Shown piece by piece: positions 22,530 through 62,218 of a DNA stretch of 64,000 bases; position 1 is the first letter of the stretch, and each line of letters begins with the position of its first letter. The notes under the pieces were generated by a model. It worked only from the letters and a program-made list of their open reading frames with translations, ran no database searches and was not told the DNA's origin. The stretch covers positions 62,001 through 126,000 of the forward strand of contig NW_003314391.1 in NCBI RefSeq assembly GCF_000143415.4, in the 5' to 3' direction. The translations under genes were made by a program, and so were the position numbers. Origin of the DNA: Selaginella moellendorffii (lineage: Eukaryota > Plantae > Lycopodiophyta).

Positions 22530-23313
22530 AGATTGTCCCGGTCCACAATACCAAAGAGAAAGCTTGGGATTTCCAACACCCTTCAAAGACTTCTGTGCAT
22601 CTGTCAGGAGGAACACCTTGTCACCCACCTTGAACTCCCAGTGCTGGCGATGTTCATTAGCCAATCACTTGTCTCGCTCCTAAGCTCGTCACATATTTAA
22701 CTTGGCCAACTCCAAGGTCTCTTGCATATGACCTAGAAACTGCTGAGCATGATGCACCTTGACCAATGACAAGCTGAGGTCCACTGGAGACTTTGGTTCA
22801 TAACCATACATCGCCATGAATGGAGACATCCCAATAATTGAATTCTAACCACTGTTGCATGTGAACTCAACCAACCACAACTACTGTTCCCAAACAGCAT
22901 GCTTCTTGAGATTCCTCACGAATGATCTCAACATGTCCTCTAACACCACTTGTTCCGTATGCCCATCAGATTGTGGATGCTCACCATTACTCATGCTTAG
23001 CTTCATCTCTAACTTCATGAATACTGCCTGCCAAAACTTTGAAGTAAACTCTGGATCACAATCACTGATAATATCGGCTGAGGCAAGCCATATAGACGGA
23101 AGAGCTCTCTCACAAACACTTGAGCAAGATCAAAAGCCTTTAACATCATCTTTACAAAGAAGAAGTGTGCCATCTTCACTAACCAATCCACAATAACCCA
23201 GATAACATCATTTCCACGTTGAGTGGTGGGCAATCCAATTACAAAATCCATGGAGATACTATCCCACTTCTACTGAGCTACTTCAAAAGGATGGTAGAGA
23301 CCAAGACTCCTTC
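22530..23313 (-). mobile_element. Ty3/Gypsy integrase fragment
   Basis: WDSISMDFVIGLPTTQRGNDVIWVIVD and HPQSDGHTEQ-like motifs; frameshifted. Confidence 0.88.
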
Positions 23314-23742
23314 ATGGCATTTCGCGAGGTTTTCTTCCTGTGTATGCTGGTCTCGACCCTCTCCATCACCCAGGTAAGAAACTCTCATTCAATTGTCCCG
23401 CAAGAAGCTCACAATTTGGATATCTTACTCTTACAGGCTTGCCAGTTTTCTCGATCCTGCACTGATATCACCTTCGACAGGAATTCGACCGTGATGAGAG
23501 CCATTTGCAGCACATCCAATATGGAAAGGAGGAACGCCTCCATCGATGTGAACAATTGCGTGGGCAGCAGCAATGGTGTCCTCGACTGCTCATCCAACTT
23601 TGCCTCACGATGCACCAACATCAGCTTCAATGGGCTCAACGTGGCTGCCCGTTGCAACCGCGGGGATGGCATTCTCGTCTCTTCCACTCGCAACCTCGAC
23701 GATTGCATCCAGAACGTCGAGGGAGTTCTCCAGTGCTGCTAG
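23314..23742 (+). CDS. Secreted cyanovirin-N homolog (CVNH) lectin, copy A; exons 23314-23373, 23437-23742; upstream region replaced by Gypsy DNA
   Basis: Signal peptide, then two repeats FSRSC..IDVNNCVGSSNGVL and FASRC..NLDDCIQNVEGVL. 63-bp GT-AG intron. Confidence 0.88.
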   Translation: MAFREVFFLCMLVSTLSITQVRNSHSIVPQEAHNLDILLLQACQFSRSCTDITFDRNSTVMRAICSTSNMERRNASIDVNNCVGSSNGVLDCSSNFASRCTNISFNGLNVAARCNRGDGILVSSTRNLDDCIQNVEGVLQCC

Positions 23743-24042
23743 ATCCTTTTGGATGATCAAACTATATCCATATGATGAATAACTGAGTGATCTCCCACAT
23801 GATCTCTCCTTGTTTGGCACGTATGTGTCGCTGTTCTGATCAAATAAAACTTACTCATGGAAGTTGTGGGTCTTTTAAGACAGACTGGAAAGTATTACTT
23901 GTACAACTTTTTTTCAATTTGCATAATGAAAATACTACAAAGACAAATCGATTTATATTAAATTAAGGTATATTATTTCTAATAAATGACAATTTCTTTC
24001 ACTTTAAAGCCTATGATCCCTCCTTATTAATGTGCCATTTCA

Positions 24043-24482
24043 TCAAGGATTAAAATCATAAATGTAGTCGACATGGGCTTGCTGCTCCTGATCACCAAAG
24101 ATGATTGACAACACACGATCATACATGTCAAGAATATTGTCTTCAAATACAGGATTATTTTACCTCTGGTTCGGCAATTTTTGGGGTGGAATTGGACAAT
24201 GGCGACCAATCCAGCTGATTAGCAATCCTAGCCATCACTGTAAAAGACAAAAAGTTTAAATCACGTATGAATCAGGTTACGTGCTTGGACAGACACACAT
24301 GCAAGCGAGTGCAGACATGGACCATGATGTTTCAAAAGAAACACAGAGATCATCAAATCCAAGCGAGGCATATTCAATCGAGATTGAAGAACAGGCGTAC
24401 CTGTTTCATTCTTCACTGGCCGAGAGGTCACAGTAGCAGCCACCAAGAGGACGAAGAAGAAAAAACTTAGTGCGCGAGACAT
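24043..24482 (-). CDS. Phytosulfokine-like secreted peptide precursor, 66 aa; exons 24482-24401, 24237-24164, 24087-24043
   Basis: Spliced product MSRALSFFFFVLLVAATVTSRPVKNETVMARIANQLDWSPLSNSTPKIAEPEEQQAHVDYIYDFNP*. Both introns are GT-AG and phase-compatible. Confidence 0.75.
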
Positions 24483-24739
24483 GATCTAGAGTTCCTCTTG
24501 CAAAGAAAATCTATCAAAGAGAGATCGATGATATGATCAGCGTTTGTGTTGATATCGTATATATGCTGCCGAGAAAAGGTCAAGCGCTGAAGAACCGCCA
24601 CGTCGACATGCAAAGCGGCAGTTTTGACTGGATGGCTGGAAACCAGACTTCCAGTTAGCTTTTCCCTCTCCAATTTTACTGGAATTCACTTGCGATAATT
24701 CTTTTCATATGCTAATGTTTATTAACTTCTGCACTTTCA

Positions 24740-25830
24740 AAATTCTAGAAGCGATGCCATCAAAATGGCTAGAGCTCCCAAGATCCTGGAGGGACTTCCA
24801 CTGTTTCCACCCGATCTTTCGTCAGCTTGGAAAGCAGGATAGTTCCGGCACTGCGGTGATTTCACAATGTCTCCAAGGCGACTATCACCATACACATCTT
24901 GGTTGCGGTACCACGTCCACAGGGCATGGGTATTGTTCTTCACCTAAAGAGAAAAAGAGCAAAATCAAGAGGTTGAACTCTCGGGGTTACCTCCAATAGG
25001 CCGTGACCAAAGCTTCCATCTCGCAGCGCGCTCCATTCCGGCTGCCTGTCCCAGCAGAATTGATTCGCCGCTGGCCCGGAGCCGAAGTTTTGAGCACAAA
25101 CTCCACCGACTTAGGGGACGTTGTCCTCAGGCTTGGGGCACTTCCCCGGATCGTCAGCGTGCTCCGTGTCCACTGTCTTTGTATTGCCGCCATCGCCCAC
25201 CACGATGTAGAGCGCGGGTCCAGCTCGTAAGTGTAACTCTGTTCTCATAGGCATGGACCTGGAAGAACACCGAGGATTCCTGTCGAGATCGAGAAGAGAG
25301 AGGGATTTTCATGGCCATTGGACAATGTCGACGCCGGCATTGTAGAGAAGCTCCTCCATTTCGAGACGCATGCACTCGACCTCGCGGTAGTTGTAGCTGT
25401 TGTACCACGGCGGATGCCACGATCCAGGGCGTGAGGAGCCTGTTGACGCGATCCTCCCAGCATCAGGAAGTGGATGCCGCCGACATCGAACGAGTACTAA
25501 AGGCTGGAATTCGATCCAGGAGGCACCGAGAACCTGGCCTTGTATGTTTTGCCCAATGCTTGGGGCTCGATCTCGTGGTTGGCACCTCCTCCATGAATCT
25601 GGGAGCAAGGAAATCAGGGATTGGATTGCGGATTTATAGTCTTGCTCTCTCTTACCTCCCCTAGTGATCCCAGTGGGGATGATAAGTCTCCCGGATTGGC
25701 GCGTCTGGAAATGCACAGCTAAAGCAGGGCGATCCAGTGCCATTGGTGATGTATTGATCCGAGTATGTGAGATCGCCCACCATGAGGAGGAGCGAGGGAT
25801 CGTTTCGGATGACGTGATCGACCGTGGCGC
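24740..25830 (-). pseudogene. Purple acid phosphatase (PAP15/PAP23-like) pseudogene fragment
   Basis: LLMVGDLTYSDQY, WHPPWYNSY, VGDGGN..HADDPGKCP, FCWDRQPEWS, SFGHGLLEV. Frameshifts; 5' half missing. Confidence 0.85.
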
Positions 25831-26229
25831 TCGCTTCTCACCTGGAACAGCACAAACAAGGAATGTCAAGTTCTCTCGCTCGAGCTCTGGAAGAGTTACC
25901 TCCTCTGCGCTGCTCCGGCTTTCAAACTCTTGAATGTAAGTTGGAGAGCCCTTCGAATAGCACAGTGCCTGATTGCCCGACTTGGGCGATGCATTTGATG
26001 ACCGAGCCGCAAAAATTTCCCTCCTCCTCGTCTTGTTGGTCATCGAGATCTCGCCTCCCAGAGCAGCAGCAGCAGCAGTAGCAGCCATGGCTTTCCATCC
26101 CAGCAACTAAGTGGCTGATTTCTCGATGCCACAAAAGGAAGCTTTAAAATAATCCTCCTCGAAGAAAGAAGAAACTCGTCACCTCACTGGAGGTGTCGCT
26201 TGATCAAGCTCATCATGTCCCAGTCCCTC

Positions 26230-26420
26230 TCTCGAGAGCTCCAAGCATGAGGATGGACTGCGCGCCGGCTCGAGCTCACCCACCATCTCCGCGGCGCGCT
26301 CCGCCCGCTCCACGTCGCCATGCATCCGGCACCCGCTCAGCAGCGTCATCCAGCCCGTGACGCACTGCTCGAACGGCATCCTCTCCACGAGCTCCTCGGC
26401 GTCCTGGAGCCAGCCGCAGC
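26230..26420 (-). pseudogene. PPR E-domain fragment
   Basis: DAEELVERMPF..WMTLLSGCRMHGDVERAERAAE. Confidence 0.8.
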
Positions 26421-26559
26421 GTCCCCAGCCAGCAGATCCACCAGGCACATATAATGCTCCCACAGCAACTCCACCTCGCTTTCGCAAACAACACGCAATA
26501 TTGTATTATGAACTTCCATTTCTTGTCCGCATGTCTCTGAGATCGTTGCACTGCTCAAG

Positions 26560-26970
26560 GCATACCGTCCCGAATGGAGTCCAGCCGCTATCAATTCGGC
26601 AATCGTAACTACAGGTAACACTATGTGCTTTCCAGAAGAAAACAATCGATTATTTTCTCTTGTCACTGATAACTCTGGGGAGCCGATGAAAGACGCAGCA
26701 TTGCTCTCCGGCACCTTCGGTGGAGACCACATCAACCCAAACGCGGCTGCTCATCCGGGCCTCGTCTACAATGCCAAGGCACCCAAATTCACGAACTTTC
26801 TGTGTGAATTGAGGCAGGAAATACGAAACGTCTCCACTTTCACGAACTTGAAACCATCTGTTTCACTAGACGACAAATGGCTTCCAGCAATCTCAACTAT
26901 CCCTCCATCGCGATCTCTTCGCTCAAAGGAAAGAGAATCATCCACCGGTGAGTGACAAACGTAGACGAGC
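26560..26970 (+). pseudogene. Subtilisin-like protease C-terminal fragment
   Basis: WSPAAINSAIVTT, GDHINPNAAAHPGLVY, NLNYPSIAIS, VTNVD. Confidence 0.8.
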
Positions 26971-27344
26971 AAGCGTGGAGGCTCTGGACGGTGTTTCGGT
27001 ATCGGTGCGCTAACACCCGCCACTTTTGGAATTCCTGCCTGAACCGTTGCCTTCTCGTAGAATTGGAAAGCAGTCGAAACACTCCATGAGGATGTCGTTG
27101 TAACCCTTGCAACTGCCTTCGTACTTCTTCCAGTTTGTTTGGCCTGGGTTTATGTAGGACTTCGTACTTGTCAACCGGCGGTGTCGAAATCCAACGTCGG
27201 GTACCGTACATAGATATTTAACTTCTGATTTGAGAAGAGGGAGGGGAGGGTTCAGAAACTTCAGAAACTGAAACCCAAGCGCATCAATTTCCGTTCCACA
27301 TCTTACCCACAGTCCTCCAACAAATGCAGGATGCGACCTCTGTG

Positions 27345-29330
27345 TGCAAGTTGACTTCGCTGCTCTCAAGTTCCGGAAGATGGCGAGTCGGTGGTTTGAT
27401 ACGCGAGTTCGTCGCAAAGAACATGAACCGGTTACGACTTGGTTGCAGTTGAAGAAGCTACTACTCGCTCGGTTCTTACCTCAGCAATACGAAGAGCAGC
27501 TGTACATGAAGTGGCAGGATCTTTGTCAGGGACCAGAGGAGTCTGTTACTAATTTCACCGAGCGCTTCCATGAACTTCAAATTCGGTTGGGTGTACACGA
27601 AGAAGAGAAATGGCTTGGGACTTCGACCTGGTATTCGAAAGGAGTTAGAGACGAAAGTTTTCAAGTCATTCGTCATGAATCACAACTGAAGGAGTTTCGA
27701 TAGCGAGTGAATCAAGTGCACACAGCTTCCGGTGCTTCTGGCGGTCGTGCTCCCGTAGCTACGCGTTTGCAGTATGACCAGGAACGTCGTCCAGCACCTC
27801 ACACGGGATCCGGAAGTGGCGATGCGGCGAAATTCAATGGCCGGTGCAACTATTGTCAAAAGTTTGGCCACAAAGCGTCAGATTGTCGTACTCGGATTGC
27901 CAACGTTGCTGCAGGACGCACCATCATAATATGGGGGATGACGATGAAGTGATCTCTGTTGCTCCATAACAACAGATTCGACCATCTGTGGGCGTAGCCG
28001 TCTTGAATAACCATGCGAGTGCTTCTGAGGCTTTGTTCACAGCGGTAGCTCAAGTGTGCAATAAATTGTTATCGGTCACATTTGACAATGGCTTCCAGCG
28101 TGATCTTATTTCTGCCGATGTTGTGCCACGCTTACGTTTGAAGCTGCTACCACACCCTCAACCGTACGAAGTCGAATGGTTGCAGAAGAGCCATGTTCTT
28201 CGAGTCACACAACAGTGCCGTGTTTGGTTTTCAATCAACAGTTCTCCGATGAAGCGCTTCTGGACGTGTGTGAGATGGACGTCGCGGGAATCATTCTCAG
28301 CAAACCATATCAATGGCTGAGGCGACCTCAGTACGACGCATTTGCAAATACATACTTTTTGAGGAAGGACGATAAGAGGTGGCTACTGCGGGCGTCGTCA
28401 CCTACAAACAAAACTCCACAATCGTTATTGATTTCTGCAAAAGAACCGGTCGTTAACATCGGAGAATGGTGGCATTGCTTTTGTGGCGTACCTCAGAGAA
28501 TCAAGCCAAAGTTCTGAACATGTTCAAACTGCTGCACATGGATTATCAGCTGTTGATCGTCAGCGTATCCAGGCAGTCGTTAATCAATTTCGAGATGTTT
28601 TACCTGAGGAACTTCCATTCGTGCTATCGATCTGAACAAGATTGAGTTTGTTCCTGGAGCGAGACTTCCAAATCACCGACCTTACAGAATGTCGCAAACA
28701 GAAGTGACTGAGATGATATGACAGGTACGAGAGTTGCTGAGTCCCAAAGGTTTGATTCAGCGCAGTGTTTCACCCTGCTCAAGTCCGCTGTTATTTGTTC
28801 CAAAGCCCGACGTTCTTTGAGGATGTGCAATGATTTTCGTCTCATCAATGATATATTGATCCGCAAGTGCCATCCTATTCCGACCTCTTCGACCTCTTCG
28901 ATCTTGCTGCGGGCGCTTCTGTGTTCAACAAATTGGATCTCCGTAGTGGATATCAAGTGCGCATTGCTCAAGACAATACTTGGAAGACTGCATTCTCAAC
29001 ACCTGAAGGCCTGTGCGAGTGGTTAGTCATGCCTTTTGGTTTGTGCAACTGCGACATTTGTGAGGATGATGAACGATGTATTTCGCGACGAGATTGGTAA
29101 GTTCGTCGCCATTTACTTCGACGATATTTGGTATATAGAAAGTTTTTGGAGGAGCATTTTCGTCATCTGGAGACTGTTCTCGACAAGCTTCGGAATGCAA
29201 CATTATTTCTACATCCTAAGAAAAGCGACTTTGGGCTGTCGGAGGTAACTTGGGATTTAGACTTGCTGCAACAGGAACCACAATTGATCCGGATAAAGTT
29301 CACGCAGTGTTGAGATGCTCCAATCTCCAT
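27345..29330 (+). mobile_element. Degenerate Ty3/Gypsy gag-protease-RT remnant
   Basis: TTWLQLKKLLLARFLP, CNYCQKFGHKASDC knuckle, [26 protein letters not shown]. Confidence 0.88.
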
Positions 29331-29599
29331 GAGTTGCGCAGTTTCTTGTGCAGTTTCTTGTATCAAGATGCTTTTGCAAACAATCTTTTCGATCTGTATT
29401 ACAGAAAACTGTGATTAATTTGTTTATTAAAAAGCCTTGCAAAGCTTACTTTGCCGCCTTTGCCAGAATTTCAATGTACAAAGTTTGCTGATGATCATGA
29501 GAGTCGGATGTCCGCGATAAGTCAGCTCCTGAACCTCCTTTCTTATCAGAGAAGAATCGAAGCCTTACTTGGGAGGCTGCGGCCCCTGGAAGCAGCTGA

Positions 29600-29820
29600 A
29601 TCTGGCTCCGGAAGGGCTTTCTGCTCTGGAGTGGTAAATGCGATTCTGCTGCTGAGTCAAGATCGATCATCGATCTTTGTTTGGCTTTGGTGCAGGAATT
29701 GACCGCCGTGCAAGAAGTTTTCAAAGGGGATGTGAAGGATGAATCTGCCGATCCGGTGATTCAGATGGAGAAGTGATCACAGCCGATCATCGGGGCCATC
29801 AACGGGCTGGAAATCACCGT
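29600..29820 (+). pseudogene. Enoyl-CoA hydratase/crotonase fragment
   Basis: GSGRAFCSGV, intron, then LTAVQEVFKGDVKD..PIIGAING. Confidence 0.7.
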
Positions 29821-31646
29821 AAGAGGCTCATGCAGATGGTCACTTCCTGAAAAAGATATGCATCTGGAGGGTTAAATTGTGCCGGTTCGTGCAGCTCTTC
29901 TAGCAATTTAGTGTGGACGATTGGATCGACGTAAAGGTGTATGGTAACAATGATGCAGTTCCCAGCTCGACGTCCCAGGACGGCGAGAGGATCAACTAGC
30001 TCTCTTTATGAGGAGATGGCGAAGGTAACGTTAACGTATTAGCTTCTTTGCAAAGACTTTCAATTGGTGTTTTACTCTTTGATGGCATTTGTAGGAATTG
30101 TCCAGACAAAGCATCGAGATCAACTGTGGAATGTGTGGGCGTCGTCCGATGAGAATAGAGTACGAGATCGAGGTCGCGTCCTGCATTTGTTGGAGGACTG
30201 TGGGTAAGATGTGGAACGGAAATTGATGCGCTTGGTCTGAAGTTTCTGAACCTCTTCTCAAATCAGAACTTAAATATCTATGTACGGTACCCGACGTTGG
30301 ATTTCGGTTGACAAGTACGAAGTCCTACATAAACCCAAGCCAAACAAACTGGAAGAAGTACGAGGGTTACAACGACATCCTTATGACTGTTTTCCAATTC
30401 TACGTGAAAGCAACGGTTCAGGCAGGAATTCCAAAGGTGGCAGATGTTAGCGGGGAGTATGGATGTGTATGAAGTCATGAAATTCTGTATACCCTAAACT
30501 TCAATCCTGGTTTTGCTTGTCTGATCTTTCTCTTCTTTCTAATGTGGACACCTCAGATGCAGGAAAAATCCGAAGGTAGATCAAAGGCGGCCAAATGAAA
30601 TCTCTGCTGGTCAGGTGATGCCTTGGGAGTTTCTGCGTCCAGAGAGCAGCACCGCACGACTGATGTGGCAACCCTGTTCACTGTCCCATTGTTGAAGAGG
30701 GGGATGTTGAGACAGACCAGCTCTATCCGGTAAAGATTGGCAACGTCCAGCTTCCTTGAAAGTTGACGACCGGGAGCGATGTGCGATCCAGTCGACTTCA
30801 AAAAAGTCATGGGGTGTGAACTACAACGACAAACGTGAACATGGACGGTAAAGTTATTTGCTTTATGGAGTTGTATTCTTAACTCCTTATACCAGACTGC
30901 CAAAGGTAGAGAGCCAGGGAAGTGCAAAGACATCAGTGCAAACGAGCTTCAGATGACTCAGTAGTGATTGTGAATGAAGAAACAGATGGATTGGAACATG
31001 ACCACCCGTGATCAACTGATGGCCGTGGAAGAGCATGCGAGTGGACACCGGCTGCCAGGGATGACTTAGAGGATTCAGGACTGAATCTTCAATGGTCATC
31101 TCCATGCACGTTCAGGTAGAAACTCATCTGCAACATTGACTAGTCACTTTGGCTGATCATGGCAAAGAAGTTACAGGCCATGGTGTGGGACATGCAAGAG
31201 CAGGGAGTGGGCTGCAAAAGATGGTGGCTGGAAAGACACAAGCTCCTGTTGCAAAGCAGGACTGCTCGCGATCAAAGAGACGAGGTAATTTTGTTATTTG
31301 GCCTGGAAGGACATGATGCTTAATGAAAGCCAGCACTAATGCTGTGTATGCTTCCACAGTCATATTTTCAGCCTCACGTTGGCCCTTCTTCGTTCCTTCT
31401 TTTTCGTTGGTCTTCTTCTACTTCAGTCTGGGCATAGTCCAGCAGTTAGATGATGATATGTGTAAACGCATCAAGACAGGCATACCTCAGCTATGAATCC
31501 TTCTCTTGCTTCGGCAGCTTCTCCCCAACCCTTCAGAAAGAAAAGCGGAGCAAGAACAATGGATTTCATTTCAACACACCCCTTGATTCATATATGGCTG
31601 TATATATATACAACTTCAATCAAATCAGAAATCACTAGAGATTTGA

Positions 31647-33188
31647 TCACGATTCGGACTGCTTGTCATGTTCATCATTATTCCTACACTCCCCCTTCAA
31701 GCTGAGGGTGCTTGACACTCCAAGTTGATTCCTCAGCTTGATGAATGTGAGCTCTGAAAGTGGCTTGGTTAGAAGGTCCGCCAACTGATATTGTGAAGGA
31801 ACGTATTCCAGGTGAAGATCTCCGGCTGCTACATGTTCGCGAATGAAGTGATGCTGCACGTCTATATGTTTCGTATGAGCATGAAACACAGGATTCTTTG
31901 ACATGGCGATTGCACTTCTGCTGTCGCAATGCAGAATGGTCACATCTGATTGCTGTTGATTGAGTTCTCCAAGTAATCGACGAAGCCAGATGATCTCCCT
32001 TGCTGCTGTACTGGCAGCTACATATTCTGCTTCTGCACTAGAAAGAGCAACCGTCGTTTGCTTCTTGCTTCCCCATGAAACCGGAGCACCAGCAATTATG
32101 CAGCAAATTCCGGAGGTTGAATGTTGTGTATCCAAGTTGCCAGCCCAATCTGCATCGCAGTAAGCTTGAAGAACAAATTTGGATTGACCTGAGCATTTGT
32201 AAACCAGTCCATGAGCAGCCGTTCCTTTCAAATACCTCAAAACTCTCTTCGCCATCTGCCAATGATAACAACTCGGAGACTGTATGTATCGGCTGAGGAA
32301 ACCAACGGCAAAGGAGATGTCGGGGCGAGTCATGTTGGCGAGGTAGAGTAGTCCTCCAACAAGCGATCGGTAGACCGAGGGCTGATCAAATAAATCATCC
32401 ATCTTGCTTGTGAACTTGATGCCAGTGACGACTGGTGTAGCCACGGATTTGCAACTTGTCATGTTGAACTGGTTGAGAAGCTTCTTCACATATTGGCGCT
32501 GTGTGAGGGTGATTGTCCTGTCTGCTTCATCCCTGTCAACTTCCATCCCTAACAGCTGCTGCACAGCTCCTAAGTCCTTCATCACAAACTTGTTCATAAG
32601 CTTGATCTTCACATCCTTCAAAACAGTGTCATTGTTGCTGACAATCAAACAGTTGTCCACATAAACTACTATCACAACAAAGTGATCACCCTGCTGAAGA
32701 AGATATAGATTTCCATCGCTGTTCAACCTCTGCATAAGAAAAGAATCCAAACATTCATACCACTGATGGGAAGCCTGCTTAAGGCCATAAAGAGCCTTGC
32801 GAAGCTTGCAGACGAGTTCGGAGCACTGTGATCCAAAAAGCTCAAAGCCTGGGGGTTGCCGCATAAATATCTCCTCCTTCAAGTTCCCATTAAGGAAGGC
32901 TGTTTTTACGTCCATGTGATGTGCGCACAAACCAAACTCCGCTGTAAAAGCCAGAAGCATTCTGATACTTGTCTGCTTCACAATTGGTGAGAATGTCTCA
33001 TCAAAATCCACTCCAGGAACTTGTGAATATCCTTGAGCAACAAGTCTTGCTTTGTAATGTTGTACCGATCCATCAGGATTTCTGTGAAGCTTGAACACCC
33101 AGCGTGATCCAACAACTTCACGTCCTTCAGGAGCTTCCACCAAGTCATAAGTCTGGTTCTCATCAAGAGAATTCAACTCATCTTGCAT
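31647..33188 (-). CDS. Copia RT-RNaseH reading frame
   Basis: YKARLVAQG, HMDVKTAFLNG, LYGLKQ, YVDN (second catalytic Asp of YVDD mutated), YCDADWAG, KHIDVQHHFIRE. Confidence 0.9.
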   Translation of the reverse strand: MQDELNSLDENQTYDLVEAPEGREVVGSRWVFKLHRNPDGSVQHYKARLVAQGYSQVPGVDFDETFSPIVKQTSIRMLLAFTAEFGLCAHHMDVKTAFLNGNLKEEIFMRQPPGFELFGSQCSELVCKLRKALYGLKQASHQWYECLDSFLMQRLNSDGNLYLLQQGDHFVVIVVYVDNCLIVSNNDTVLKDVKIKLMNKFVMKDLGAVQQLLGMEVDRDEADRTITLTQRQYVKKLLNQFNMTSCKSVATPVVTGIKFTSKMDDLFDQPSVYRSLVGGLLYLANMTRPDISFAVGFLSRYIQSPSCYHWQMAKRVLRYLKGTAAHGLVYKCSGQSKFVLQAYCDADWAGNLDTQHSTSGICCIIAGAPVSWGSKKQTTVALSSAEAEYVAASTAAREIIWLRRLLGELNQQQSDVTILHCDSRSAIAMSKNPVFHAHTKHIDVQHHFIREHVAAGDLHLEYVPSQYQLADLLTKPLSELTFIKLRNQLGVSSTLSLKGECRNNDEHDKQSES

Positions 33189-34224
33189 TACTGAAATCCA
33201 CTTATCTGCATCAGGAGCTTGAATCGCTTGCTCAAAGTTGACTGGTTCAGAAGCTATTTCTGTTGTTGCAAAAGACCATTGCTTGGGATGAGGTGCTCTG
33301 CTTGATCATCCAGATGCTGTCCGCCCATAGTTCTCCACATTGAATGGTAGATCACGTGTGAGCCTGTCGACTTCTCCAGTTCGTGCACGATGAGCAGCAT
33401 CGCCCTGTTCTTCAGGAAGAAAAGATCCAGAGACTGGTGTTGGATGATCGTCTGCTAAAGGAGATGAGGGATAGATGATTGTCAGATCATTGTCATCTTC
33501 ATCACCGTCTTCAACACCATCCCAACTCCATTCTTCCGGAGTCCAGTTCATGTTTTGATCTGAGCTTCCTTTTTCTTGAACATGATCTTTGTAGAGTGTT
33601 CCTTCATCAAAACGAACATCAGTGCTTACAAAAATTTGATGATTACCAGGCTGGTACAGGCGATATCCTTTTGAATTGGAATCATATCCAACAAGAAAGG
33701 CCAACTTGCTTTTGCTCTCCAACTTGCCGAGATGCTCATCCACCCTTTTTGCAAAGCTTAAACAACCAAAACGCTTGAGATGCACCACCAATTGTCTTTG
33801 ACCAGTCCAAAGCTCTTCTGGGATCTTGTTGGGATTGCGAGAATGAGGGAGAAGGTTTTGAACATGCACAGCTGATCTGACTGCTTCAGCCCAGAGGAAT
33901 TTTGGTAGTCCTGATTCTTGAAGGAAGCACTGAACTGCATTCATGATTGTCCTATTCTTGCGCTCAGAGACTCCATTCTGTTGAGGGGTATGAGAGCAAG
34001 AGCACTGATGAAGAATTCCTTATTCAGCACAGAATTGCTGAAAGGACTTGTTGACGTATTCCCCTCTTGAATCAGTACGTAAACAACCAACCCTCTGACC
34101 AGTTTTCACTTCAGCTTCTGCTACAAATTGCTTGAATTTGCTGAAGACTTCATCTTTGTGACGAAGAAAGAAGACGTCCGTGTGCCCGGAAAAATCATCT
34201 GTAAATGTCACAAAATACTTTGTG

Positions 34225-39436: not shown

Positions 39437-41998
39437 TTATGCTGATGCCAGGAGCATGGTGTTACGCTCGGCCTCAAAGTTGGGTGCCACAGCCTGGTTA
39501 TAAATCTTGACACCTTTCAAGGAACCTGTGAAGAAGGAATTGCCCGAGCGAGAATCCCAACCCAGAAACACAGGGATAGATGCATCCAAGCTCCTCACCA
39601 CAGTGCCACTTTTAGAAGCTGACAGCTCGCCATCAATGTAGATCCGCCCCACACCGTTATCACGCACGGCCACAATGTGGTGCCACTCGCCGTCGTTGAT
39701 GGCAGAAGACGCAGAGAAGTCGAACTGAGTCGCAGAATTCCCATACACAAAGAAGTGAGGCTTGCCATGGACCAAGTAGAGCAAGTATTCGCCATTGAAA
39801 CCGTTTGTTGTGCTGCTTTGCGGGCTCCTTTGCTGGATGATGATCGCTCGTGAAATTTTACCAGCACTTGGGGGCACCTTCACCCACGCATGGATGGAGA
39901 AGGATGTCTTGCCAGACAGAGAGGGTTTTGTTCCTAGCACCACCTTGCCAGCGCCGTCGAAGGTAAGTCCGCCGTCGGGATTCCACGTCGTTGATCCCTC
40001 GATGCTCCCGGTTGCTCCGTTCCAGGACGAATCCTTTGCAGAGACTCCACTCTTGTCATCCAGCTTCCACCATGCCACGAGAGCTTCTGGCCAGGTGCTG
40101 AGATACCTGATCTCTTCCTGTTCTAGAGCTCGGCTGTAGATCTTTGCCCCCATCAAGGAACCCGTGAGGAATGAGGTGTTGTCGCGCGCATCAGCACCCA
40201 TGAACACGGGGATAGTTACATCCAAATACTTGATGTCGCCGCTTGCAGAGGCCGATAGCTTGCCATCAATGTAGATCTGGCCCTCGGCCTGATCACGAAC
40301 GGCTACGATGTGGTGCCATCCACCGTCGTTGATGGCAGCTGAGGCAGAGAATCTGAATTGATCTCCGGAGTCCGAAAACACCCAGAACCGGGGCTTGCCT
40401 TCAAACAGACTGAGCTGATATCCTCCGTCGGAGCCACTTGTGATGCTGCTCAGTGGACTCCTTTGCTGGATGATGACTTGTTCTGAAGTACTGGTAACAT
40501 ATATCCACAAGGCGATGGAGAAGGATGTCTTGCCTCTGATGGAGGGACTTGCGCCGAGTGACACCGTCCCTGCACCTCCAAAGGAAAGCCCATTGCCGTT
40601 GTTCCAGGATCCTCCTTTGAGTACCCCATTCGCTGCATGCCCAGACGAATCTTGCACTTTCGAGCCGCTCGCCTCATCCATCTTCCACCAGCCCAGGAGA
40701 GCAGCGGGACGGAGGGTTACGTATCCTGTGGAGCTTCTCAAGAGGGAATTCTGGATAGTGTACTTGAGATGGTCGAGAAACAATCCTGCTGCCAAAGACG
40801 GCGTGTAAGTAATCTGGTTCCAGCTAGAGTTTGAGATGCTAGTGGCACTGCCCAAAGCCGAAGGAGACTGGACCGAGGCGATCGTGAGTGATTTGACGTC
40901 GGCATCCAGATCGTTGGCCAGAACGTCCAGGCTCTTGAAGCAAGTGCAACAGGTGCAATTCTGCGGGATGTCGATCGCATCCATATTCGCACGGGGTGGA
41001 CGGGCAACCGTAATGTTGCTTGCAAGGCGAGGAACACCAGACTTGTAGCGCAGGATCTTGGCAAGCTCGGAAGACGAGAAACGGGAGAGCTGGTTGTCGG
41101 ACATGATAGTCGGTCCCTCGGGCCGTCCACCACCTTCGTAGTGGCTAGATCCCCAGTTGTGACCAGCCTCGTGCCGCCAGATGACCGTGAAATCTCCGTT
41201 TGCAGTAGCGCTGATGGCCGAGTATCCCACCGGCTTAGCCGCCGTTGCTACCCATGCCAAGCCTCCGTTAGCCCGAGGATGGGCAACCAAGCAGAGCTTG
41301 TGAGTGTTGCCTACCACGGAAGCAATGGCACCTCTCCATTGTTTCTCCACCCTGTCGAGCAGGACTCCGGTCTTGGGGTTTCCATATGGATCTTGGGACT
41401 GACTTGCACGGATCACCACTTTCCCAATCGTGTGAAGAATGGAAGCATCTCGGAGGAAGGGCATATTCGCAGACAGGATGGAGAACTCTGCCATGTTCAC
41501 TGTGTTCTCGACGCTAGAACCTGTTGAAAGGTAGTACAAGTAAGTAGCATCCACTCCGACTTCCGCTACGAAGAGTACAGCGTCGGATTTGGAAGCAGGA
41601 ACGAGGCTGGTTGGCCACTGGGGATTCGAGTTCCAACCCGTGGTTCCCCTCACCGAGGCCTCGCCTCCGGTGCTGCTCCACTCCACCCCGTTCTCGAAGC
41701 TGATTCGACAAAGCAGAGTTCCGTTGACGTTGAGCAAGGCCGTGGCCATGGCACCGGGGTGGTCTCTTACTGAACCCAGGTACGTACGAGAAGGCGGGAT
41801 GTTGTCGTATGAGAGAAAGCTGCCACTGTCATTCTGCACTAGCACGCCAAAGTTGGGACTGCGGATTGAGAAGGGCTTCAAGTCCACCGTCACTTTGTCC
41901 CCGCCACTGCTGATGGTTCGAACCAGATCATCCTGCTGCTCGGCACTTCTTGCGACTAGGAAGAGCAGAAGAAGAGTGATGAGAACAAGGCGAAACAT
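39437..41998 (-). CDS. Secreted metzincin (reprolysin/M12-like) metalloprotease with cadherin/Ig-like and two LamG domains, 853 aa, intronless, copy A
   Basis: Signal peptide MFRLVLITLLLLFLVARSA. Zinc motif HEAGHNWGSSH (41141-41173) with Met-turn TIMS. LDVLANDLDAD..LTI repeat. Two WWKxD..DSS..NG...DGxWHHIVAVRD..IYIDG LamG repeats. TATAAAA at 42035-42041. Confidence 0.9.
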   Translation of the reverse strand: MFRLVLITLLLLFLVARSAEQQDDLVRTISSGGDKVTVDLKPFSIRSPNFGVLVQNDSGSFLSYDNIPPSRTYLGSVRDHPGAMATALLNVNGTLLCRISFENGVEWSSTGGEASVRGTTGWNSNPQWPTSLVPASKSDAVLFVAEVGVDATYLYYLSTGSSVENTVNMAEFSILSANMPFLRDASILHTIGKVVIRASQSQDPYGNPKTGVLLDRVEKQWRGAIASVVGNTHKLCLVAHPRANGGLAWVATAAKPVGYSAISATANGDFTVIWRHEAGHNWGSSHYEGGGRPEGPTIMSDNQLSRFSSSELAKILRYKSGVPRLASNITVARPPRANMDAIDIPQNCTCCTCFKSLDVLANDLDADVKSLTIASVQSPSALGSATSISNSSWNQITYTPSLAAGLFLDHLKYTIQNSLLRSSTGYVTLRPAALLGWWKMDEASGSKVQDSSGHAANGVLKGGSWNNGNGLSFGGAGTVSLGASPSIRGKTSFSIALWIYVTSTSEQVIIQQRSPLSSITSGSDGGYQLSLFEGKPRFWVFSDSGDQFRFSASAAINDGGWHHIVAVRDQAEGQIYIDGKLSASASGDIKYLDVTIPVFMGADARDNTSFLTGSLMGAKIYSRALEQEEIRYLSTWPEALVAWWKLDDKSGVSAKDSSWNGATGSIEGSTTWNPDGGLTFDGAGKVVLGTKPSLSGKTSFSIHAWVKVPPSAGKISRAIIIQQRSPQSSTTNGFNGEYLLYLVHGKPHFFVYGNSATQFDFSASSAINDGEWHHIVAVRDNGVGRIYIDGELSASKSGTVVRSLDASIPVFLGWDSRSGNSFFTGSLKGVKIYNQAVAPNFEAERNTMLLASA

Positions 41999-43257
41999 TT
42001 TCTTGGATCTGCAGAGAAACGAATGCAAAGTGGGTTTTATAGTCGCTAGTTTGGCTGTAGTGACACTGGGCCCAAGCGAAGGCTGTGCGCCACATATATT
42101 GATATACGCTCACAGCCAAAGGCTCGCATATCTGATATATGTCACCATATGTCACAGACTCGAGTCGCGACATGCCCGATGGTACACTGGTCCCAAACCA
42201 AGAGATGACTATGGTACGGGTACGTCTATATTCGATTCTCTAGATATTTTACAGCTAAACATAACTTGACAACAAAAGTACTGACTACTCTTTGAGACGT
42301 GTTTGTGAGTTTGGTGTGGATGGACGGGTAGGTGGCACATATATCCAGGTCAGCGCTGCTTATCATCTAGATCTGTGGTGAGAGCTTGGGATCTTTAGGT
42401 ACTTAGATACGAATATCTTGCATTGCTCCAGTGCCGCTTTCAAAATGACCAGCACTGATCTTCAAATCCAGCAAACCAGCGGAGAAATAAACACTTGACA
42501 AGAAATCACAAGTTCCTTTTTAAGTTGGGAGGCTTGATTCGCTGGGCAAGACGTCCAACATGAACTTGGCCATGATTGGCTTAAACACACAAGGCCCATC
42601 AAGTTTGAATGTGCAAGCGCCGGGATTGACAGATGATTGACGTAAACCATCCAAGCAAAACAAACAAGTTCATGTCAGGTGCTTAATCCCACTAATATAC
42701 ACCCATGCCAGTGTGTAATCAACCTGGTACAATCCTCAGCTCTTGTAGCGCTGGTGAGCCAAACGTGCATCTTACCGTGCTTTGGCAACGTGTTTAACCC
42801 GGGGCAGCAAAACTCTCTCCATTCGAAATGAGCCACGTGGCATAAAGGCCGCATCTCGCCACGTGGCCGGGTCACGGTTGATGAGATTGACGATGATGGG
42901 TGAATGCAAAAAATATTTCTGAATATTTAAAAGATGCTTTTAGAATCTTTTCATTTTTTTAGGTTTTTTAAGTTTGAAGCTGACAAACGCGTTTGGAGCA
43001 TAATTTGGCGTTTGCAAACGCGTTTGCGTCTATGCGTTTGCAACGTTTGTGCGTCTGCCTGGTAAGTATGTATCAAACCCTACCCGGTGTGGCTTCAGTC
43101 GTGATTGCTGCAAGATCGTTCACCTTCTTCATGCTTGGTGTTTGGCTTCAGCTTTCGGAGAGCAGAAAAAAGACTGTTAGAAGCTTGGAACTTGGAAGTG
43201 GTTTTCTGATAAAAATTAAATCTTTCTTGGCTGTGAACAATGGTAACTGACTACTAC

Positions 43258-47190: not shown

Positions 47191-47692
47191 TGGAGGCTCC
47201 GATATCTTCCAAATGGCTCGCAAAGATAAAGTATCCTTCATCTTGAGGAATTTATGTGCTTTTCGATTTTACGTCTACCAGCAGTGTGGACATACTGGAT
47301 AATCTTCGCGATTCTATCTATGGGCACGTAGAAATCGATGTCTCCTGGAGTCTCTTCGTAGCGGTCTTGCCCCAAAAAGGGTGTCTAAGTTTCGATCCCA
47401 TTTATAATCTAGCAAATCAAAAGAAACACGCAAACTCCTAAAAATGTCACCGTGTTGGAACGTTGAAAAATCATAAACTGAGCTAAATTTCAATATTTAC
47501 GTGTATAGTAGTGTAGTCGATGTAGTAGAAATTTTGCATTCTAGCCGCAATGTGGAGTCATGTACTAGCTGAGTAGTCAAGATAAGCGTCGCTCCCAGGA
47601 CTATATAAACAAGGCCTTTCCAGAGCTCAACTCATCTCTAGTTAAAGTTGTTTACTCATTTTCTTCTTGGTTATTTCTTGTTCTATCTCATT

Positions 47693-48121
47693 ATGGCATT
47701 TCGCGAGGTTTTCTTCCTGTGTATGCTGGTCTCGACCCTCTCCATCACCCAGGTAAGAAACTCTCATTCACTTGTCCCGCAAGAAGCTCACAATTTGGAT
47801 ATCTTACTCTTACAGGCTTGCCAGTTTTCTCGATCCTGCACTGATATCACCTTCGACAGGAATTCGACCGTGATGAGAGCCATTTGTAGCACATCCAATT
47901 TGGAAAGGAGGAACGCCTCCATCGATGTGAACAATTGCGTGGGCAGCAGCAATGGTGTCCTCGACTGCTCATCCAACTTTGCCTCACGATGCATCAACAT
48001 CAGCTTCAATGGGCTCAACGTGGCTGCCCGTTGCAACCGCGGGGATGGCGTTCTCGTCTCTTCCACTCGCAACCTCGACGATTGCATCCAGAACGTCGAG
48101 GGAGTTCTCCAGTGCTGCTAG
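47693..48121 (+). CDS. Secreted CVNH lectin, copy B; exons 47693-47752, 47816-48121
   Basis: As copy A, but retains a TATATAAA box at 47602-47609 and a pyrimidine-rich leader. Confidence 0.9.
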   Translation: MAFREVFFLCMLVSTLSITQVRNSHSLVPQEAHNLDILLLQACQFSRSCTDITFDRNSTVMRAICSTSNLERRNASIDVNNCVGSSNGVLDCSSNFASRCINISFNGLNVAARCNRGDGVLVSSTRNLDDCIQNVEGVLQCC

Positions 48122-48406
48122 ATCCTTTTGGATGATCAAATTATATCCATATGATGAAAGATGAATAACTGAGTGATCTCCCACATGATCTCTCCTTGTT
48201 TGGCACGTATGTGTCGCTGTTCTAATCAAATAAAACTTACTCACGGAAGTTGTGGGGCTTTTAAGACAGACTTACTTGTACAACTTTTTTTCAATTTGTA
48301 TAATGAAAATACTACAAAGACAAATCGATTTATATTAAAGGTATATTATTTCTAATAAATGACAATTTTAAAGTCTATGGTCCCTCCTTATTAATGTGCC
48401 GTTTCA

Positions 48407-48836
48407 TCAAGGATTAAAATCATAAATGTAGTCGACATGGGCTTGCTGCTCCTGATCACCAAAGATGATTGACAACACACGATCATACATGTCAAGAATA
48501 TTGTCTTCAAATACAGGATTATTTTACCTCTGGTTCGGCAATTTTTGGGGTGGAATTGGACAATGGCGACCAATCCAGCAGATTAGCAATCGTAAAAAAG
48601 ACAAAAAGATTAAATCACGTACGAATCAGGTTACACGCTTGGACAGACACACATGCAAGCGAGTGCAGACATGGACCATGATGTTTCAAAAGAAACACAG
48701 AGATCATCAAATCCAATCGACGCATATTCAATCGAGATTGAAGAACAGGCGTACCTGTTTCATTCTTCACTGGCCGAGAGGTCACAGTAGCAGCCACCAA
48801 GAGGACGAAAAAGAAAAAACTTAGTGTGCGAGACAT
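48407..48836 (-). pseudogene. Phytosulfokine-like precursor, copy B; exon-2 acceptor deleted
   Basis: A ~12-bp deletion at ~48591 removes the AG acceptor and the first codons of exon 2. Confidence 0.65.
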
Positions 48837-49099
48837 GATCTAGAGTTCCTCTTGCAAAGAAAATATATCAAAGAGAGACCGATGATATGATCAGCGTTTG
48901 TGTTGATATCGTATATATGCTGCCGAGAAAAGGTCAAGCACTGAAGAACCGCCACGTCGACATGCAAAGCGGCAGTTTTGACTGGATGGCTGGAAACCAG
49001 ACTTCCAGTTAGCTTTTCCCTCTCCAATTTTACTGGAATTCACTCGCGATAATTCTTTTCATATGCTAATGTTTATTAACTTCTGCACTTTCAAAATTC

Positions 49100-50175
49100 T
49101 AGAAGCGTTGCCATCAAAATGGCTAGAGCTCCCAAGATCCTGGAGGGACTTCCACTGTTTCCACCCGATCTTTCGTCAGCTTGGAAAGCAGGATAGTTCC
49201 GGCACTCCAGTGATTTCACAATGTCTCCAAGGTGACTATCACCATACACATCTTGGTTGCGGTACCAGTTCTTCACCTAAAGAGAAAAAGAGCAAAATCA
49301 AGAGGTTGAGCTCTCGGGGTTACCTCCAATAGGCCGTGACCAAAGCTTCCATCTCGCAGCGTGCTCCATTCCGGCTGCCTGTCCCAGCAGAATTGATTCG
49401 CCGCTGGCCCAGAGCCGAAGTTTTGAGCACAAACTCCACCGGATTGGGGGACGTTGTCCTCAGGCTTGGGGCACTTCCCCGGATCGTCAGCGTGCTCCGT
49501 GTCCACTCTCGTTCTATTGCCGCCATCTCCCACCATGATGTAGAGCGCGGGTCCAGCTCGTAAGTGTAACTCTGTTCATCCTCTCATAGGCATGGACCTG
49601 GAAGAACACCAAGGATTCCTGTCGAGATCGAGAAGAGAGAGGGATTTACATGGCCATTGGACAATGTCGACGCCGGCATTGTAGAGAAGCTCCTCCATTT
49701 CGAGACGCATGCACTCGACCTCGCGGTAGTGGGAGCTGTAGCTATTGTACCACGGCGGATGCCACGATCCAGGGCGTGAGGAGCCTGTTGACGCGATCCT
49801 CCCAGCATCAGGAAGTGGATGCCGCCGACATCGAACGAGTACTAAAGGCTGGAACCTGGCCTTGTATGTTTTGCCCGGGGCTCGATCTCGTGGTTGGCAC
49901 CTCCTCCATGAATCTGGGAGCAAGGAAATCAGGGATTGGATTGCGGATTTATAGTCTTGCTCTCTCTCACCTCCCCTGGGGATGATAAGTCTCCCGGATT
50001 GGCGCGTCTGGAAATGCACAGCTAAAGCAGGGCGATCCAGTGCCATTGGTGATGTATTGATCCGAGTATGTGAGATCGCCCACCATGAGGAGGAGCGAGG
50101 GATCGTTTCGGATGACGTGATCGACCGTGGCGCTCGAGTTGTAAGTGAGTCCCAGATCGTACCAGCTCAAGATCT
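49100..50175 (-). pseudogene. Purple acid phosphatase pseudogene, copy B
   Basis: DLGLTYNSSATVDH and WHPPWYNSYSSHYREVEC. Confidence 0.85.
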
Positions 50176-50856
50176 CCCTCCTCACCTGGAACAGCACAAA
50201 CAAGGAATGTCAAGCTCTCTCGCTCGAGCTCTGGAAGAGTTACCTCGTCTGCACTGCTCCGGCTCTCAAACTCTTGAATGTAAGTTGGAGAGCCCTTCGA
50301 ACAGCACAGTGCCTGATTGCCCGACTTGGGCGATGCATTTGATGACCGAGCCGCAAAAACTTCCCTCCTCCTCGTCTTGTTGGTCATCGAGATCTCGCCT
50401 CCTAGAGCAGCAGCAGCAGTAGTAGCAGCCATGGCTTCCATCCCAGCAACTAAGTGGCTGATTTCTCGATGCCACAAAAGGAAGCTTTAAAATAATCCTC
50501 CTCGAAGAAAGAAGAAACTCGTCACCTCACTGGAGGTGTCGCTTGATCTTCATCATGTCCCAGTCCTTCTCTGCGAGAGCTCCAAGCATGAGGATGGACT
50601 GCGCGCCGGCTCGAGCTCGCCCACCATCTCCGCGGCGCGCTCCGCCCGCTCCACGTCGCCATGTATCCGGCACCCGCTCAGCAACGTCATCCAGCCCGTG
50701 ACGCACTGCTCGAACGGCATCGTCTCCACGAGCTCCTCGGCGTCCTGGAGCCAGCCGCAGCGTCCCCAGCCAGCAGATCCACCAGGCACATATAATGCTC
50801 CCACAGCAACTCCACCTCGCTTTCGCAAACAACACGCAATATTGTATTATGAACTT

Positions 50857-52200
50857 TGCTCCATAACAACAGATTCGACCATCTGTGGGCGTAGCCGTCT
50901 TGAATAACCATGCGAGTGCTTCTGAGGCTTTGTTCACAGCGGTAGCTCAAGTGTGCAATAAATTGGTATCGGTCACATTTGACAATGGCTTCTAGCGTGA
51001 TCTTATTTCTGCCGATGTTGTGCCACGCTTACGTTTGAAGCTGCTACCACACCCTCAACCGTACGAGGTCAAATGGTTGCAGAAGAGCCATGTTCTTCGA
51101 GTCACACAACAGTCCCGTGTTTGGTTTTCAATCAACAGTTCTCCGATGAAGCGCTTCTGGATGGACGTCGCGGGAATCATCCTCAGCAAACCATATCAAT
51201 GGATGAGGCGACCTCAGTACGACGCATTTGCAAATACATACTTTTTGAGGAAGGACGATAAGAGGTGGCTACTGCGGGCGTCGTCACCTACAAACAAAAC
51301 TCCACAATCGTTATTGATTTCTGCAAAAGAACCGGTCGTTAACATCGGAGAATGGTGGCATTGCTTTTGTGGCGTATCTCAGAGAATGAAGCGAAAGTTC
51401 TGAACACGTTCAAACTGCTGCACATGGATTATCAGCTGTTGATCGTCAGCGTATCCAGGCAGTCGTTAATCGCTTTCGAGATGTTTTACCTGAGGAACTT
51501 CCATTCGTGCTATCGATCTGAACAAGATTGAGTTTGTTCCTGGAGCGAGACTTCCAAATCATCGACCTTACAGAATGTCGCAAACAGAAGCGACTGAGAT
51601 GATATGACAGGTACGAGAGTTGCTGAGTCCCAAAGGTTTGATTCAGCGCAGTGTTTCACCCTGCTCAAGTCCGCTGTTATTTGTTCCAAAGCCCGACGTT
51701 CTTTGAGGATGTGCAATGATTTTCGTCTCATCAATGATATATTGATCCGCAAGTGCCATCCTATTCCGACCTCTTCGACCTCTTCGATCTTGCTGCGGGC
51801 GCTTCTGTGTTCAACAAATTGGATCTCCGTAGTGGATATCATCAAGTGTGCATTGCTCAAAACAATACTGGGAAGACTGCATTCTCAACACCTGAAGGCC
51901 TGTGTGAGTGGTTAGTCATGCCTTTTGGTTTGTGCAACGCACCTGCGACATTTGTGAGGATGATGAACGATGTATTTCGCAACGAGATTGGTAAGTTCGT
52001 CGCCATTTACTTCGACGATATTTGGTATATAGCAAGTTTGTGGAGGAGCATTTTCGTCATCTGGAGACTGTTCTCGACAAGCTTCGGAATGAAACATTAT
52101 TTCTACATCCTAAGAAAAGCGACTTTGGGCTGTCGGAGGTAACTTGGGATTTAGACTTGCTGCAACAGGAACCACAGTTGATCCGGATAAAGTTCACGCA
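50857..52200 (+). mobile_element. Gypsy protease-RT remnant, copy B
   Basis: LDLRSGYHQ, MPFGLCNAPATF, YFDDI. Confidence 0.85.
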
Positions 52201-60235: not shown

Positions 60236-62218
60236 TTTCTTGGATCTGCAGAGAAACGAATGCAAAGTGGGTTTTATAGTCGCTAGCTTGGCTGGCCTTA
60301 TAGTGACACTGGGCCCAAGCGAAGGCTGTGCGCCACATATATTGATATACGCTCACAGCCGCATATCTGATATATGTCACCATATGTCACAGACTCGAGT
60401 CGCGACATGCCCGATGGTATACTGGTCCCAAACCAAGACATGACTATGGTACGGTCTATATTCGATTCTCTAGATATTTTCCAGCTGTAAAGCTTGGAAT
60501 CCGTAGACCTAATAAACATAACTTGACAACAAAAGTACTGACTACTTTTTGAGACGTGTTTGTGAGTTTCGTGTGGATGGACGGGTACCAAGGTAGGTGG
60601 CACATATATCCAGGCCAGCGCTGCTTATCATCTAGATCTGGTGAGAGCTTGGGATCTTTAGGTATTTAGATACGAATATCTTGCATTGCTCCAGTACCGC
60701 TTTCAAAATGACCAGCACTGATCTTCAAATCCAGCAAACCAGCGGAGAAATAAACACTTGACAAGAAATCACAAGTTCCTTTTTAAGTTGGGAGGCTTGA
60801 TTCGCTGGGCAAGACGTCCAACATGAACTTGGCCATGATTGGCTTAAACACACAAGGCCCATCAAGTTTGAATGTGTAAGTGCCGGGATTGACAGATGAT
60901 TGACGTAAACCATCCAAGCAAAACAAACAAGTTCACGTCAGGTGCTTAATCCCACTAATATACACCCATGCCAGTGTGTAATCAACCTGGTACAATCCTC
61001 AGCTCTTGTAGCGCTGGTGCTTCCACAAAGAATCTTGTTGCTGAGCCAAACGCGCATCTTACCGTGCTTTGGCAACGTGTTTAACCCCATGCTTAATGAA
61101 TCTGGAGCTGGTTAACTGTCATGGTTTAAAGGAGTTAAATGTCAAAAACAAAGTTTCCAGGGTGCAAGTAGCTGGGCGCGCAATGGTTTGTAGATGGCAA
61201 AGAATGAGTAGGGTCCCATTGTTGTCTCAAATATACGAATAAACAATCTCAAATGGGTTTACGGTTATAATTTAGTCTAAGAATATTCCTAGTAGACCAT
61301 TGAAATAAATTGATTGATTGATTAACATGAATTAATTAATATTAGTTTTGTGTCTATTAATTTTTATCTTATGTTTTGTCTATAAACACCTGTTTAATCT
61401 CTCTAAAACAAAGGGCTTTTCTGTTTCACCACCTGTCTCCAAGTTAGTTTTCATTTAATGAAATCACTTGTCTTTTGTTATAAGTAACCTGTTTATACTT
61501 TTTATACTTTTTATAAGTAACCTGGAATACTTTTTATCTGTCACAAAAATTTCTGAATTCATTGAGGCCACATCAGGTTTTTTATTCACTCATGAAGCTC
61601 TGGGATTCATAGCAGTCACGTAAGGAAGACCATCTTTTGATGTTTGTGAATGGCTCTTTTTGATGATTGTGAATAAGATCAGATTTCATGGAAGCAGAGC
61701 TAGGCAGACTTCTGGATCAAGCCCATAAGGTAATTTGAATTACCCCAAGCTCCAAGTTGGACCCCTCCAGTAAAAATGGCCAATCATCATATATATTAAT
61801 GTTTTCTGCATTTTTTAACATAATTTATCAGCTAAAATGCTGTAAGCCGCAAGCAAAGCTAGCTCAGATCCAGTCAGTTTTGAGAATGCCGAGCTGTTCT
61901 TCCGCTCGTTCCGTCGTCTTCTCTTAAAGATCCATCACTGTTCTTTTCATGATGGAGAATTTAAAAGGAACCCTCGAAAATGCTTGATTGCGATGAAGCA
62001 AATGTGAAATGAACACGCGGGAGGAGCATATGGCCCCAAACCACCCTACATCTTTAGGGCTGGACTCATTGAATCAGCAAATATTCATATGGAATATTCT
62101 ATATTCCACCACCACCTTTAGCACATAAAGGTTATGTCATTCTCCCTCATACAAATGTGGAAATCAAACGGATTTCCAAAGCTAAACGGGCTTCATGTTT
62201 TGAGTCCTAAGAACAATG

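Follow-up and report, generated by a model that had tools for sequence, protein, structure and literature searches.

Selaginella moellendorffii has an unannotated gene that is transcribed, spliced and real, and that we read, on balance and from its sequence, as a member of a small family encoding precursors of phytosulfokine (PSK)-like, probably sulfated secreted peptides that are plausibly kin to PSK. This gene, referred to here as copy A, occupies three exons on the minus strand at 24043-24482 of the window (the whole 64,000-nucleotide stretch of DNA that was analysed), which carries no annotation for it; the model was read from the sequence and rebuilt in a script.

Starting at the ATG at 24482, exon 1 (24401-24482, 82 nt) encodes a predicted signal peptide and the start of the propeptide and ends in phase 1. 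It is followed on the same strand by intron 1 (24238-24400, 163 nt, GT..AG), by exon 2 (24164-24237, 74 nt), which specifies a variable propeptide with an NST sequon, by intron 2 (24088-24163, 76 nt, GT..AG) and by the coding part of exon 3 (24043-24087, 45 nt including the TGA), which reads EQQAHVDYIYDFNP and stop. The joined coding sequence of 201 nt is open and yields a 66-residue protein with the C-terminus EEQQAHVDYIYDFNP, in agreement, to the base, with the two GT-AG introns and 66-aa product of the original prediction. The PSK-like module AHVDYIYDFNP, at 24046-24078 on the minus strand, comprises the putative sulfation and processing site and the candidate peptide. GC content is 0.41 and 0.33 in the two introns versus 0.49 in exons 1 and 2. 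As had also been claimed, the gene is invisible in the mechanical list of open reading frames (ORFs), because each exon is a mere fragment of a longer or shorter ORF. The pattern DY[IVL]Y occurs twice in the six frames of the window, both times in copies of this gene, compared with 0.95 occurrences in shuffled windows. An Rfam search of the whole window gave no match.

Splicing of copy A is directly visible in contigs of X1, a contig-type run that was taken as RNA by its type and evidently is RNA. A single 129-nt contig (k-mer depth 19) joins 24430-24401, 24237-24164 and 24087-24063, so that both junctions put forward for checking, 24401/24237 and 24164/24087, are present in one contig exactly as predicted, with CT..AC borders on the plus strand that correspond to GT..AG on the minus strand. 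Another X1 contig, of 265 nt, covers 24401-24665, its edge at 24401 coinciding exactly with the exon-1 donor. Neither intron of copy A is covered by any X1 contig, and the X1 material thus behaves as spliced RNA; in the genomic run X3 the introns are covered. Coverage by the X1 contigs breaks off at 24063, where the Ile codon begins, and leaves out the last 20 nt of the coding sequence (IYDFNP and stop), so that the frame of copy A has RNA support through ...AHVDY only. At the other end, a 5' leader of at least 183 nt (24483-24665, minus strand) lies under an X1 contig. This leader contains a nine-codon upstream ORF (MSTWRFFSA and stop; 24583-24609 on the minus strand, start at 24609), and a TATATA motif at ~24560-24566 (minus strand) lies downstream of the 5' end of the X1 contig, which makes the true transcription start uncertain.

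Two raw RNA-seq runs from 2026 were sampled to ~12% each: X11 contributed no reads on copy A, and X12 placed zero reads anywhere and hence constitutes no test of the gene. Because spliced RNA is present in X1 and the raw runs have no reads on the gene, expression of copy A looks condition- or tissue-restricted. X1 also includes a 57-nt RNA-type contig (depth 5.5) in which the end of exon 1 is joined directly to 24089 and exon 2 is skipped. It enters 2 nt upstream of exon 3 through a non-canonical GT..TC intron, yet remains in frame (...KNET-E-EQQAHVDY...), and could come from copy A, copy B (see below) or an unseen paralog; that both the 129-nt and the 57-nt contigs end at 24063 suggests that expressed paralogs branch there.

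At the protein level, the N-terminus of the copy A product consists of a positive n-region (MSR) followed by a hydrophobic core at residues 4-17, with Kyte-Doolittle means for 11-residue windows of 2.2-2.9 over residues 4-20 and a hydrophilic remainder. V and S occupy positions -3 and -1 before Arg21, and the signal is likely cleaved after Ser20. The secretory signal peptide expected of PSK precursors, which the original prediction had also assigned to this protein, is thus supported by hydropathy, used here in place of a dedicated predictor, and by the small residues at -3/-1. The 46-residue hydrophilic remainder contains two N-x-S/T sequons, and the product has neither cysteines nor adjacent basic pairs, the stated lack of an upstream Cys and of a dibasic RR site being correct. 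These features support copy A as encoding a small secretory-type precursor in which a predicted signal peptide is followed by a fast-evolving propeptide and then, at the C-terminus, by the conserved acidic module EEQQ-AHVD-YIY-DFNP.

The PSK-like gene is not a singleton and belongs to a small multigene family, of which the window alone holds two copies, neither of them annotated. Copy B (48407-48836, minus strand, ATG at 48836) comprises an exon 1 (48755-48836) that differs from that of copy A by A4T and one synonymous change, an exon-2 remnant (48528-48595) and an exon 3 (48407-48451) identical to that of copy A, again encoding EQQAHVDYIYDFNP and stop. Immediately upstream of this remnant, between 48595 and 48596, a net 10 nt have been deleted, at the cost of the intron-1 acceptor and of the initial 6 nt of exon 2; among the alternative acceptors checked, no canonical AG gives an in-frame open reading, and copy B is likely a pseudogene unless a non-canonical junction is used. 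It is located inside a segmental duplication of ~8 kb (23307-31534 versus 47687-54445, 94-97% identity).

This duplication, which is interrupted by indels, carries the PSK-like gene together with its flanks and a gene for a cyanovirin-N homology (CVNH) protein, a family best known from cyanobacteria, fungi and ferns. The CVNH gene is intronless, encodes a secreted protein of 142 aa (Pfam E 1e-20) and lies at 23314-23742 on the plus strand, convergent to the PSK-like gene; its second copy is found near 47690-48120. Reads from X11 cover the 3' end of the CVNH gene (23800-23890) with 95-99% identity and, because they show 3 SNPs and a 1-nt deletion, derive from another allele, paralog or accession. 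Just past the duplicated block, ORFs of Ty1/copia type occupy 31647-33944 on the minus strand, with matches to RVT_2 (E 2e-75) and to a retroviral polymerase SH3-like domain (E 6e-21). The window also contains two intronless 863-aa ORFs placed 18.2 kb apart (39437-42028 and 57674-60265, minus strand).

Copy C resides elsewhere in S. moellendorffii, at locus L001 on GL377576.1, where it is annotated as SELMODRAFT_409681; its product, P0001, was the sole protein matched by the exon-1 frame in a search for homologous proteins. Similarity between this locus and the window is limited to ~2.4 kb (84-94% identity), and the flanks differ, which makes the locus paralogous. In the annotated model (L001 6001-6968, 113 aa), exons 1 and 2 are joined exactly as in the model of copy A, after which the DYIY exon is skipped and the reading continues in an ORF antisense to a CVNH remnant (~6690-6820 of L001). 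As this third exon is read antisense to what is left of a CVNH-domain gene, it is probably wrong. One source attaches a 'Pectinesterase inhib...' name to SELMODRAFT_409681, which nothing in the analysis supports. The intron-2 acceptor of copy C is mutated from AG to AC, and an in-frame AG located 3 nt downstream preserves a product ending in QQAHVDYIYDFNP and stop. With one acceptor lost in copy B and another mutated in copy C, the gene family is turning over.

Such lesions would also be at home in a young ORF family that is transcribed but functionless or decaying, giving rise to spliced RNA and to no stable bioactive peptide. This reading, which we judge to be quite improbable, draws on the loss of the copy B acceptor without in-frame rescue, on the AG-to-AC change in copy C, on the zero reads over the gene in the two raw runs (X12 being uninformative) and on the fact that neither the exon-1 frame search nor a phmmer search with the exon-3 frame found a homologue outside S. 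moellendorffii. The spliced RNA at depth 19 in X1 and the alternative in-frame acceptor kept by copy C speak against it, as does the pattern of divergence between the copies.

Between copies A and C, divergence amounts to 4.2% in the 5' leader, 9.2% in intron 1, 5.3% in intron 2, 6.7% in the 3' UTR and 6.5%, plus an in-frame 12-nt indel, in exon 2; the corresponding values for exons 1 and 3 are 1.2% and 0%. When all three copies are considered, the 45-nt peptide exon is identical at 45/45 nt, and exon 2, introns and UTRs diverge by ~6%. Taking the noncoding divergence of copies A and C (6.3%) as the neutral rate, the single change found in the 127 nt of exons 1 and 3 has a binomial P of 0.0024, and the conservation of these exons relative to flanking DNA, together with the in-frame nature of the sole indel in exon 2, argues against decay. 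Exon 2 itself is indistinguishable from neutral, and the 45 identical nucleotides are weak evidence when taken alone (P=0.05); gene conversion could contribute to the identity of exon 3. Conservation of exon 3 through overlap with the convergent CVNH transcript was considered and rejected, plus-strand RNA ending at ~23890, short of 24043. A conserved leader and an unchanged C-terminal module on either side of a freely varying propeptide form the pattern usual for peptide-hormone precursors.

The C-terminal module closely resembles that of the PSK precursors of seed plants (Pfam PF06404), including AtPSK1, which is processed as AHTD/YIYTQ/DLNL (PMC13157962), soybean GmPSK4a, which contains TAHIDYIYTQK (PMC13444108), and maize ZmPSK1, which contains AHTDYIYTQ. 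All have in common with copy A the heptad A-H-x-D-Y-I-Y, and copy A presents, in its AHVD-Y, the Asp before the first Tyr that is a conserved sulfation determinant in PSK (PMC10796568), as well as the D/Y processing site and the near-C-terminal position of the module. In both groups, moreover, the precursors are encoded by a multigene family and have a propeptide of variable sequence between the signal peptide and the conserved C-terminal module. Only the first three residues of the core agree, YIYDF followed by NP and stop facing Y[IV]YT[QN] in PSK; the replacements at core positions 4 and 5 (T to D and Q to F) are not conservative, and, unlike in seed-plant PSK, the module ends the protein two residues past the core. 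Lorbiecke and Sauter are said to have described, in 2002, an upstream Cys pair and a dibasic (RR) site in PSK precursors, both of which the Selaginella precursor lacks. Its 66 residues also compare with a length of 80-120 aa for PSK precursors, which share little similarity outside the module (PMC10796568).

Profile searches were run on pieces of the family. At E<=10, Pfam PSK matched neither the frames of exons 1, 2 and 3 nor P0001 (exons 1+2), pieces in which a 7-residue match is too short for the HMMER filters; the only Pfam match of these queries, Zn_ribbon_10 at E 0.21, is due to chance. With the 38-aa exon-3 frame as query, an exhaustive phmmer search returned two matches among 1.84 billion representatives, both spurious (one repeat protein, and one saposin-like segment aligning intron-derived residues); it is silent on orthologues, since a signal of 14 residues cannot reach significance at this scale. 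Of the PSK-like precursor that had been proposed, the AH-x-DYIY context near the C-terminus therefore stands, whereas formal PSK membership does not, copy A departing from the family in core pentapeptide, length and Cys pair/RR and its pieces having no Pfam match.

These departures could be explained if the peptide, secreted and possibly sulfated, were specific to this lineage and had merely converged on PSK. On this view, recognition by the tyrosylprotein sulfotransferase TPST favours Asp-Tyr in an acidic context, and the remaining likeness would be coincidental, with a receptor unrelated to PSKR or a non-hormonal role. Besides the non-conservative core positions, the missing Cys/RR architecture and the lack of a Pfam match, this explanation can invoke several reviews and surveys in which no PSK is identified outside seed plants (PMC10796568; PMC13074997). 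We nevertheless consider it unlikely: TPST recognition alone does not explain a match of A-H-x-D-Y-I-Y at the same near-C-terminal position, and the missing Pfam match counts for little given how little PSK precursors share beyond the module. TPST recognition by itself would dictate no more than the DY, and the likeness goes considerably further; common descent with seed-plant PSK therefore appears more likely than convergence, homology being plausible rather than proven. The gene is thus best read, from sequence comparison, as a PSK-like variant and not as a canonical PSK.

Other non-seed-plant candidates depart from PSK in a different way. In Furumizu et al. 2021 (PMC8462819), MpPSK-type candidates with a YIYTSQ motif are reported from Marchantia and Physcomitrium; like the Selaginella gene, these have YIY cores recognised by motif-level searches only. 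The bryophyte candidates retain T..Q and have no Asp before the Tyr, whereas the Selaginella gene retains AH-x-D and has lost both T and Q. The Thr-to-Asp replacement at core position 4 also occurs in root-knot nematodes, whose PSK mimics of the theta class (DYIYDN) are the only DYIYD peptides in the literature searched and likewise have a secreted precursor and a C-terminal motif; the preprint describing them calls this replacement absent from plants (PMC13081851). The mimics are, however, animal effector genes, and their next residue is N, in place of the F of the Selaginella peptide.

The original prediction had further suggested a natural antagonist of canonical PSK, which would occupy PSKR without activating it. 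The change from TQ to DF, in the second half of the core, would fit this role, which otherwise finds no support and which we hold to be very improbable. A canonical YIYTQ gene that could be its target in S. moellendorffii was found neither here nor in the literature searched (PMC10796568, PMC13074997 and PMC8462819), a multi-copy family suits a family of agonist ligands better, and the nematode peptides, in which T is likewise replaced by D, are described as mimicking PSK function and not as opposing it (PMC13081851). Families of longer sulfated peptides were also considered. In PSY, RGF/GLV/CLEL, CIF and TWS1, too, the precursor is secreted and the C-terminal peptide contains a DY sulfation motif, but peptides of the PSY/RGF/CIF type (PMC8462819) have 13-21+ residues, are Pro-rich and end, for example, in PPIHN. 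In the Selaginella protein six residues (IYDFNP) follow the DY and a second Tyr is found at +2, as in PSK and unlike in PSY/RGF/CIF; peptide length and family motifs exclude membership in PSY, RGF or CIF.

Under the favoured reading of copy A as a PSK-like precursor, the protein would enter the secretory pathway and lose its signal peptide after Ser20, Golgi TPST, genes for which are reported in S. moellendorffii (PMC8462819), would sulfate the Tyr following the Asp and probably also the second Tyr, and subtilases would cut at AHVD/Y, by analogy with PSK precursors, so that a short YIY-core sulfopeptide would reach the apoplast and act there as an extracellular signal. The mature peptide could be YIYDFNP, in line with the conserved terminal Pro, which hints that peptide and precursor may share their C-terminus, or it could be shorter, should an Asp-directed protease make a further cut ahead of DFNP. 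In AtPSK1, an Asp-directed subtilase of the SBT3.8 type cuts before Asp (PMC13157962), and an enzyme of this type could do the same before DFNP in the Selaginella precursor; in a sharper variant of this proposal, an Asp-directed subtilase would cut on both sides (V/DYIY/DFNP) and leave a minimal sulfated (D)YIY peptide.

In the literature searched, there is no description of a lycophyte PSK, no full-text description of a YIYDF/YIYDV family or SmPSK and no explicit statement on a PSKR orthologue in S. moellendorffii, and no Selaginella PSK candidate is named in the passages of Furumizu et al. 2021 (PMC8462819) consulted; PSK has been described as specific to vascular plants (PMC13091385). The only non-seed candidates put forward earlier are without the Asp that directs sulfation (PMC8462819). 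As SELMODRAFT_409681 exemplifies, the S. moellendorffii annotation overlooks or mis-models short peptide genes with several exons. With a transcribed lycophyte AH-x-DYIY family, the origin of a recognisable PSK-type module would move to the early vascular plants, and in the Selaginella core nature would have provided a test of which positions are important for binding to the receptor. We propose, tentatively, that the YIYD[FV] family descends, on the lycophyte side, from the gene that also gave rise to seed-plant PSK. If so, the PSK/TPST module, presumably together with PSKR, would predate the lycophyte-euphyllophyte split, and only the AH-x-D-Y-I-Y half would be ancestral, positions 4 and 5 having been free to co-evolve with the receptor.
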